Source: Macrostomum hystrix (taxonomy: Eukaryota; Animalia; Platyhelminthes). From it: a stretch of DNA of 64,000 bases. Position 1 is the first letter of the stretch; each line of letters starts with the position of its first letter. The notes below the pieces were generated by a model that saw only the letters and a program-made list of their open reading frames with translations, was not told the origin of the DNA and did not search any database. The translations under genes and the position numbers were made by a program. This document shows, piece by piece, positions 35,501 to 37,140 of this stretch. The DNA lies in the NCBI GenBank assembly GCA_950097015.1, contig CATNEN010000008.1, forward strand, positions 1,612,001 to 1,676,000. Direction: 5' to 3'.

Positions 35501-36814
35501 AAAAGTGATATAATTAAAAATACTCGCTTGTGCTTAACGTTAGATTCTTTATAAAAGCTTACTAGAAGTTGAAGTAAAATAGTAAAAAATATGATTTCGA
35601 TACATATCAGCAGATTGTCCTACCGAATTAGAGGTGTCTTCTGAGGTTACGACCGCTTCGGGCGGAACCACAGGGGAGGATGACGATAGCGGCTGCCGAC
35701 AATTGGACGAAGGCGGCGTCTTAAACAACGACGACTGAGGCGCTTCAGGCCAGACCAACGCGGCAGTCGGGTCGTTGTCCGCTTCGCCGCTGCTGGAGCT
35801 GCTGTCTAACAGAGCCGGTCGGCGACGCCGCGCGATCGGAGGCGAAGATGCCGACGAAGATCCCGAAGTAGACGATGAAAAAATCTGGGCGACTGCGGCA
35901 CTTCTTTTTCGACTGGTTCGACCAATAACGCTGGCCTCGTCTTCGTTCTGGGCATTGTCACCGTTCGTGTCGTTGACGACCTCGGCGACCGCAGGAGGAT
36001 CGGGTCGACAAGCTGGACAGAGCCAGCTAGACGAACCGGAGACATCGAAGTCTACGTCGCCGCAGCAACCGGCATGGTAGACGGCCTCGCAGTCGGAGCA
36101 GCTGCGCACTTGGGTACTGCGCGACGCTGCCGCGGTGTTGCTGTCGTCGTCCTGTTGGCTAGAAGCCGACGTCGATTTAGGCCAAACTGCGCGCCGGCAG
36201 GCGGCACAATTCGCCACACGACGCCGGCCACACTGACGAAACAGCTCCGACACTGTCGTCCTAGTCACTGTTGAAATCGAAGAAGACGACTGGGCTGCGG
36301 CGGCTGAAGCTGTCGGATTGGCTGCTGGCCGGCGCTCTCGCCGCAGCAGCTGGCCGCCCAGGCGGCTGTAGCGGAACAGCAGTCGGAAGTGTCGCCGACA
36401 GGCCGGACAAGCGTCGGATTGGCCGGACCAGCGGCGGAGGCAATCCAGACAAAAGACATGGTCGCAGCACTCTGGCGTGGCCAACTCGCCGCACGGATAT
36501 TCGAAGCAGATCGAGCAGCGATGCTGCGATGGGTTCAGTTGGAGTCGGTCTGCGGCTCGACATCTGTCGGCGGTATCGCGTCGATCGTTCTGGCTGTTGG
36601 TGTGAAAGCAGATCTCATTGTATGGCGCTATCGAAGCGTCTTCAAAGAGAGACATCGAATGCGACGAAGCCGGGCATCCGTTGAGGTCTCCGCCAGCCAG
36701 ACTGGCTAGCAGGCAGGTCGGATGAAACCAATGCCGCCGACAGCCAGCAACGTGACAGCGCTCGGCACCAACGGAATCGCAACCAGAGTTGCAGATCGCA
36801 CACCGTTGCGATGA
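32591..36814 (-). CDS. Multi-zinc-finger PHRF1-like protein (PHD-like, RING, PHD; RING-like, RING, PHD), about 890 aa, 5 exons
   Basis: Exons 36814-35624, 35430-35398, 35330-34739, 34155-33737, 33025-32591; GT-AG; sum 2670 nt in frame. RINGs [20 protein letters not shown] and [22 protein letters not shown]; [36 protein letters not shown]. The start codon is unresolved (see findings). Confidence 0.8.
33130..33690. repeat. (CAGA/CAGG)n tetranucleotide array, intronic
   Basis: Directly visible. Confidence 0.97.
34250..34670. repeat. 12-bp minisatellite (GATGAGTAGCTA), intronic
   Basis: Directly visible. Confidence 0.95.
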
Positions 36815-36864
36815 CTGCAATTTTTTGAAAGATTTTAAGTCTTTCTAATTTATCAGAGCATAAT

Positions 36865-37140
36865 TGACCAATTGGAGAAATCTATGATTTAACTGACCAA
36901 TCACGCTAATCAGATAATAATAAGTCTTAGCTGACCAATCCGAGAACCAAACGTCTTATCGAACGAATCAAAGAATCCTACGACTTAACTGACGAATCAT
37001 AGAATTTTGCGAGTTGACTGACCAATCAGAGAATCCTATGAGTTAACTGACCAATCAGAGAATCCTATGAGTTGACTGACCAATCAGAGAATCCTTTGAG
37101 TTGACTGACCAATCAGTGAATCCTATGACTTAACCGACTA
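36865..37140. promoter_or_regulatory. 29-bp-periodic array of CCAAT boxes (CTGACCAATCAG) directly upstream of the PHRF1-like gene
   Basis: CCAAT at about 36868, 36897, 36935, 37022, 37051, 37080 and 37109; CGAAT variants at about 36964 and 36993. Confidence 0.55.

Follow-up and report, generated by a model that had tools for sequence, protein, structure and literature searches.

A spliced leader joined in phase to a Macrostomum RING/PHD gene, with its terminal AUG as the probable start codon

The RING/PHD gene and its open frame

The window, a stretch of 64,000 nucleotides from Macrostomum hystrix, holds on its minus strand a gene for a protein with RING and PHD zinc fingers (Table 1). Pfam detects a RING and a PHD in the exon 1 ORF and a second RING together with a strong PHD in the next two ORFs, and the protein is laid out as two modules, each composed of a RING-H2-like finger, a RING-HC finger and a PHD, with the RING-HC at residue 100 of each module. 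A unit of three fingers is thus present twice in the protein, as an internal duplication (35624-36814 versus 34739-35330). The gene model is drawn without exon boundaries between 33737 and 32731, and the acidic, serine-rich C-terminus is common to the window gene and its M. lignano counterpart described below.

Two intronic repeats give rise to long false ORFs, one being a 12-bp microsatellite of 35 copies in intron 2 (34250-34670, ATHL repeat) and the other (CAGA) x 140 at 33132-33692 (CLSVCLSV repeat). A paralogous gene lies elsewhere in the window, at 51878-53396 on the minus strand; it has the same finger (CPGHNFHLICL...CPMETC) with a RING in the next ORF, and is 36-48% identical to the M. 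lignano protein modules. An Rfam search of the window gave no match.

Table 1. Features of the RING/PHD gene and of the region upstream of it (window coordinates)
Feature	Position	Strand	Basis
Tandem array, 51 bp x 3, with GGCCAATCA boxes	37660..37810	-	repeat finder
Tandem array, 29 bp, good copies with CTCTGATTGGTCAG on the gene-sense strand; candidate NF-Y-type promoter element	36931..37149	-	repeat finder
In-frame TAG that shuts the frame upstream	36845..36847	-	sequence
In-frame TTG, proposed near-cognate start; in the outron, lost by trans-splicing	36818..36820	-	sequence and RNA contigs
AG of the trans-splice acceptor, context TTGCAG	36815..36816	-	RNA contigs end at 36815
Exon 1, 397 codons in phase 0 from the leader AUG: RING-H2-like finger, RING-HC 1, PHD 1	35624..36814	-	RNA contigs (35623-36815), Pfam
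First zinc finger, RING-H2-like, Cys6 to Cys48 (leader Met = 1)	36674..36802	-	alignment, weak Pfam
First in-frame genomic ATG	36653..36655	-	54th codon after the acceptor; codon 55 counting the leader Met
RING-HC finger 1	36395..36520	-	Pfam zf-RING_2, E 1.1e-6, above cut-off
Intron 1, 293 nt, GT..AG	35331..35623	-	joint in X5 and X6 contigs
Exon 2: second RING-H2-like finger, RING-HC 2, start of PHD 2	34739..35330	-	RNA contigs, Pfam
Intron 2, 583 nt, GT..AG	34156..34738	-	contig loose end before 34738 matches 34154 downward
Exon 3: remainder of PHD 2; 3′ donor CAG/GTAATA predicted	33737..34155	-	Pfam PHD E 4e-10, tblastn
Probable last coding stretch and stop (32593-32591)	32591..32731	-	tblastn with residues 795-839 of the close relative P0001

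The first zinc finger has the ligand spacing C-x2-C-x16-C-x2-H-x2-H-x2-C-x12-C-x4-H and lies wholly upstream of the first in-frame ATG of the genome. It is matched weakly by Pfam (zf-RING_2, E 0.003). We found its ligands C, C, C, H, H, C to be invariant in a six-row module alignment, the rows of which include a distant 157-aa protein (P0059) that has the same finger-plus-RING module, in which a Met of its own precedes the first Cys by 13 residues, and whose finger reaches zf-RING_16 at the Pfam cut-off. Furthermore, in a comparison of finger 1 with the finger that opens module 2, the local-alignment score was reached by only 2 of 2000 shuffles, and on the strength of such alignments we regard the two fingers as paralogous; a BLASTP comparison of the two modules gave a significant alignment for the RINGs alone. 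An AlphaFold model of the N-terminal 170 residues, made with the 6-row alignment, gives a pLDDT of ~80 for RING 1 and 56-68 for finger 1, which we take as neutral, since it appears neither to help nor to hurt the coding case for finger 1.

An earlier note on this DNA had claimed that the ORF has no AUG before this first finger, and the claim holds: the frame is shut by the upstream TAG, and the next in-frame ATG (36655-36653) comes about 54 codons on, as the note had put it, after the complete Cys/His finger. The minus-strand text ...CTTTCAAAAAATTGCAG running directly into TCATCGCAACGGTGTGCGATCTGC is present (in longer context, ...AAAATCTTTCAAAAAATTGCAG and then TCATCGCAACGGTGTGCGATCTGC), with base 1 of the exon at 36814, and in this frame the TTG at 36820-36818 is the sole start-like codon ahead of the first finger. 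At the acceptor the GC content jumps, from 0.357 over the preceding 300 nt to 0.611 in the sequence that follows; the GC content of codon third positions does not separate the frames of the RING/PHD gene and is evidence neither way. Further upstream, the GTAAGT donor (37231-37226) and the ATG (37271-37269) that the note had listed are both present and, as it said, out of frame.

Spliced leader at the 5′ end of the RNA contigs

Four runs of one study contain ~57% of the words of 35500-37500, which is about the exon's part of that interval. The contigs aligned to 34700-39600 came from two of these four runs (X5 and X6), X1 (a run of another study, guessed to be RNA) and X4 (a sediment metatranscriptome). 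All are Logan contigs of unrecorded library type, from which the share of trans-spliced versus unspliced RNA is not derivable.

The X5 and X6 contigs are cDNA-like, as they skip 35331-35623 together with one intron of the upstream gene, both of them GT..AG. Exon 2 and then exon 1 up to 36815 are covered by one contig of each run, of 1739 nt and depth 13 in X5 and of 1726 nt and depth 24 in X6, and beyond 36815 each continues for 22 extra letters. The letters of the overhang were read for X5, where they are, in mRNA sense, GCGAAGACTCAATTTATTGCAT, followed by G36815 and by TCA TCG CAA CGG TGT; for X6, the overhang is known by its length (22) alone, from the record coordinates.

The published spliced leader of Macrostomum lignano is 35 nt long, CGGTCTCTTACTGCGAAGACTCAATTTATTGCATG, and ends in ...TTGCATG (PMC8629364). 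We found that the 22 overhang letters plus G36815 are the last 23 nt of this leader with 0 mismatches, that is, 23 of its 35 bases are seen at the junction. G36815 is ambiguous, being either the G of the acceptor or the final G of the leader AUG. The leader sequence is absent from the window, even when 3 mismatches are allowed, and therefore it is not a nearby cis exon. Furthermore, the TTGCAG at the junction fits the trans-splice acceptor motif of M. lignano, [T/C]TNCAG (PMC8629364). The junction reads AUG/UCA UCG CAA CGG UGU, giving M-S-S-Q-R-C-A-I-C in phase 0, and the frame remains open from the leader AUG through exons 1-3, over 735 codons. The mature mRNA thus starts with the leader, and the ORF follows its terminal AUG in phase 0.

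This is the same junction, in contigs of two runs, that the earlier note had proposed from the genomic sequence, with the CAG at 36817-36815 as trans-splice acceptor and M-SSQRCAIC in phase 0. The observations it had named as speaking against its proposal turned out otherwise: the leader is found at 36814 in the contigs of two runs; it ends in AUG, as the overhang closes with ...TTGCAT plus G36815 and the published leader with GCATG; and no cis-spliced upstream exon is seen, the contig depth being zero over 36832-37487 in X5 and X6. No contig of X5 or X6 crosses the acceptor unspliced, and contigs cannot prove absence in this interval. Its fallback, initiation at UUG, receives no support, as this TTG sits 5′ of the acceptor and is lost when the outron is cut off.

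The sediment metatranscriptome (X4) contains 151-nt pieces of exon 1, at 36234-36384 and 36463-36613, with 0-2 differences, which fits a sediment-dwelling meiofaunal animal.

A syntenic M. lignano ortholog and the upstream arrays

Homology searches gave no matches, whether the query was the whole of exon 1, its residues 1-170 or the first 160 residues, for which low-complexity words and length limits are the probable cause. Among representative proteins, an exhaustive search turned up a single close relative (E 1.4e-72, 45% identity over exon 1), the cluster mates of which are from M. lignano: PAA57670.1 and PAA51364.1 (BOX15_Mlig034528g1 and Mlig023977g1), which carry the label 'partial' in the database, and UniRef A0A1I8GR37. 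The M. lignano loci are L002 (NIVC01002459.1) and L003 (NIVC01003453.1) of assembly GCA_002269645.1. A phosphorylase-kinase gene lies upstream at both, and likewise in the window (KPBB_C, E 6.5e-5, below the Pfam cut-off), and because of this common neighbour we consider the genes to be syntenic orthologs. The M. lignano ortholog has the same architecture as the window gene, and exon 2 is 67% identical between the two.

At the 5′ end, the M. lignano frame is closed by a TAA and, as in the window, has no in-frame genomic ATG. A GCAG in M. lignano aligns with the GCAG of the window, at the same codon distance of 12 nt before the first Cys codon in both species, and upstream of the acceptor the similarity between the two sequences collapses. 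The first finger is ~60% identical to that of M. lignano, which is above the protein average, and all ligands are kept. In the M. lignano proteins, no Met occurs until residue ~178, past RING 1. The earlier note had suggested checking whether orthologs keep the first finger and have an AUG there; in M. lignano the finger is kept and no genomic AUG is present. A leader AUG at the M. lignano GCAG is predicted to give M-Q-S-R-Q-C, and we infer that the ortholog is processed in the same way. The predicted acceptor (3946/3947 in L002) lies 54 and 15 nt ahead of the starts of the deposited M. lignano models (L002 4001 and L003 4001), which bear a partial flag. Partial models of this kind are the usual annotation outcome when a leader that carries the ATG is trimmed.

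The CCAAT array that the earlier note had seen upstream of the gene is real, being the 29-bp tandem repeat at 36931-37149, with a further CCAAT-box unit at 36895-36903. The CCAAT box of CTCTGATTGGTCAG lies on the plus strand, opposite to the sense of the gene. The NF-Y-type consensus RRCCAATSR has 34 matches in the window compared with 9.5 expected, a count that no shuffle reached, and five of the matches are at 36895-37115. Upstream of both M. lignano homeologs we found 36-bp arrays (L002 2877-3330, 12.6 copies; L003 2007-3328, 36.6 copies), so that the copy number is threefold different between the homeologs. The 29-bp and 36-bp arrays have in common a 17-nt core with 16/17 positions identical, for which 0/1000 shuffles reach the score. 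Furthermore, the exact 14-mer CTCTGATTGGTCAG is present in gene sense in both species, with 3 exact and 3 near copies in the window array; the M. lignano arrays have 9 and 20. CCAAT arrays built on one 14-nt core thus lie upstream of the window gene and of the ortholog alike, while those of the ortholog differ in period (36 bp versus 29 bp) and in position, at ~620-1070 bp upstream of the acceptor versus ~115-335 bp.

Further upstream, M. lignano also has a second array, 44 bp x 8-17 (L002 2066-2429, L003 827-1585). Compared with the 51-bp array of the window, the common part is CTGGCCAA(T/C)CAC alone, a weak likeness (32/1000 shuffles). The array comparison covers the window plus the two M. 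lignano loci, a scope that does not distinguish locus-specific arrays from a dispersed family.

The distance to the upstream gene bears on whether the RING/PHD gene is a member of an operon. The KPBB gene shares the strand of the RING/PHD gene, and its contigs reach to 38052 or 38127, leaving about 1.24-1.31 kb to the acceptor; subtraction of the two tandem arrays (219 + 151 bp) leaves a gap of ~0.87-0.94 kb, the operon threshold of PMC8629364 being 1 kb after repeat adjustment. In M. lignano the corresponding gap is ~2.5 kb. No RNA contig spans the gap between KPBB and the RING/PHD gene, an observation that, with contigs, cannot show absence. Because of the conserved CCAAT arrays, we lean towards a candidate CCAAT-box promoter of the gene's own rather than operon membership.

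Within or beside an intron of the kinase gene (38535-39150), two segments (38800-39127 and 39456-39600) have a contig depth of 750-2900, compared with ~13-25 on the neighbouring genes, and show loose ends and rearranged joints in large number; an element that is strongly expressed or present in many copies probably lies at 38800-39600.

Where translation would start, and known systems

The observed junction suggests the following course of events. The 5′ part of the pre-mRNA would be an outron, AT-rich and carrying the TTG and the CCAAT arrays, that is cut at TTGCAG (36816/36815) and replaced by the Macrostomum spliced leader. The final AUG of the leader would thereby be placed directly ahead of UCA UCG CAA CGG UGU, in phase 0, as a donated initiator Met, and the ribosome, starting on this AUG after a 32-nt leader, would make a protein that opens with M-S-S-Q-R-C and extends over at least 735 codons. 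With the junction and the frame observed, we consider it probable that ribosomes use this codon and that the leader donates the initiator Met of the RING/PHD protein. A conserved part of the protein sits upstream of every other in-frame AUG, and the leader AUG would therefore be required for finger 1 to be made.

The same trans-spliced mRNA could also be read from further downstream, with the leader AUG mostly skipped, translation starting at 36655-36653, no first finger in the protein, and the first 54 codons amounting to a 5′ UTR that is open by chance. By vertebrate rules none of the three AUGs of the mRNA is in a strong context; that of the leader AUG, with U at both -3 and +4, is weak, and only 32 nt of leader precede it. 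Moreover, about one third of trans-spliced genes would have the leader AUG in frame by chance, and 28% of trans-spliced transcripts have it in frame in S. mansoni according to the summary in PMC9851317. The first 54 codons are, however, among the best-conserved parts of the protein, with every zinc ligand kept between species that are 45% identical overall, and the M. lignano ortholog has no Met there, its next Met being beyond RING 1. Furthermore, the composition turns coding-like exactly at the acceptor. Downstream of the leader AUG, the mRNA next offers an out-of-frame AUG with an ORF of 11 codons, overlapping the first in-frame AUG of the genome, so that a ribosome skipping the leader AUG would meet this decoy before 36655. 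Predominant use of the downstream AUG is thus rather unlikely, although it keeps more weight than the other alternatives. Because the context of the leader AUG is weak by vertebrate rules, leaky scanning to 36655-36653 could nevertheless yield a second, finger-less isoform beside the product of the leader AUG.

The other alternatives dispense with the leader. In one of them, a transcript that is not trans-spliced would start at the near-cognate UUG (36820-36818), which has an A-rich context, is in frame two codons ahead of the exon, and has precedent in the UUG starts known in other trans-splicing species (PMC9851317); but this TTG is in the outron, where no contig of either run covers 36832-37487 or crosses the acceptor, and the aligned M. 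lignano sequence has no TTG at this place, leaving such a start very improbable. In the other, an ATG-bearing cis exon further upstream has been overlooked and is joined to 36814, perhaps via the GTAAGT at 37231; in its favour are a good donor and an ATG 40 nt before it. This candidate is out of frame, it has no RNA contig coverage, and at the acceptor sits instead the leader, in two runs; a missed cis exon is largely refuted by these observations and is the least probable of all the readings considered. Initiation on the donated AUG of the leader accordingly remains the reading that we prefer.

We also consider, more tentatively, a wider reading that we would not bet on as a whole: that dependence on the leader AUG is old and conserved across Macrostomum, that finger 1 obligately depends on trans-splicing, that the balance between AUGs switches between forms of the protein, and that the CCAAT array is conserved as a cis-regulatory element. 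If this were true, the acceptor would have been kept at the same position and in the same phase in species whose proteins are 45% identical, and trans-splicing would be obligatory for the first RING-like finger. A shift in the relative use of the two AUGs, or in the ratio of spliced to unspliced RNA, could then decide whether the protein carries its N-terminal finger, and the identical 14-nt core upstream of both orthologs would represent a cis-regulatory array kept as a repeat.

For annotation, genes of this kind are deposited as 'partial' or cut to the next Met, as seen for the M. lignano ortholog; in the window gene, truncation to the next Met would silently drop a whole zinc-finger domain. 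The RNA data support the view that the terminal AUG of the leader is coding sequence outside the parasitic flatworm groups as well, and the RING/PHD gene offers a testable case in a genus that is capable of transgenesis.

With regard to protein architecture, the window gene resembles the PHRF1-type proteins of animals, in which a RING-HC is followed by a PHD and a long Ser/Arg/acidic tail, and many long proteins (1700-2800 aa) match the RING stretch near their N-terminus. The window protein may be called PHRF1-like by the order of RING-HC and PHD, a likeness that covers domain order and not orthology; unlike PHRF1, it has the RING-PHD unit duplicated, with an extra RING-H2-like finger before each copy.

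With regard to translation, a start codon supplied by the leader was reported for flatworms as early as 2006, and the RING/PHD gene adds a case, not a new mechanism. As summarised in PMC9851317 and PMC12582326, the work of Cheng, Cohen, Ndegwa and Davis on S. mansoni (J Biol Chem 2006) described the 3′-terminal AUG of the leader as an initiator Met, with >40 cDNAs that needed it by the account in PMC9851317; use of the leader AUG as initiator in flatworms is also treated in PMC12582326 and PMC5832876. In Macrostomum, the leader AUG has been noted in the literature as a likely start codon, and ~30% of M. lignano genes are trans-spliced (PMC8629364). The mRNAs of S. mansoni that use the leader AUG are like that of the window gene in carrying an AUG-terminated leader in frame with an ORF that lacks an AUG of its own before a conserved N-terminus. 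S. mansoni is, however, a trematode in which use of the AUG was shown experimentally, whereas the window gene belongs to a free-living macrostomid in which the leader AUG would probably be used in the same manner.
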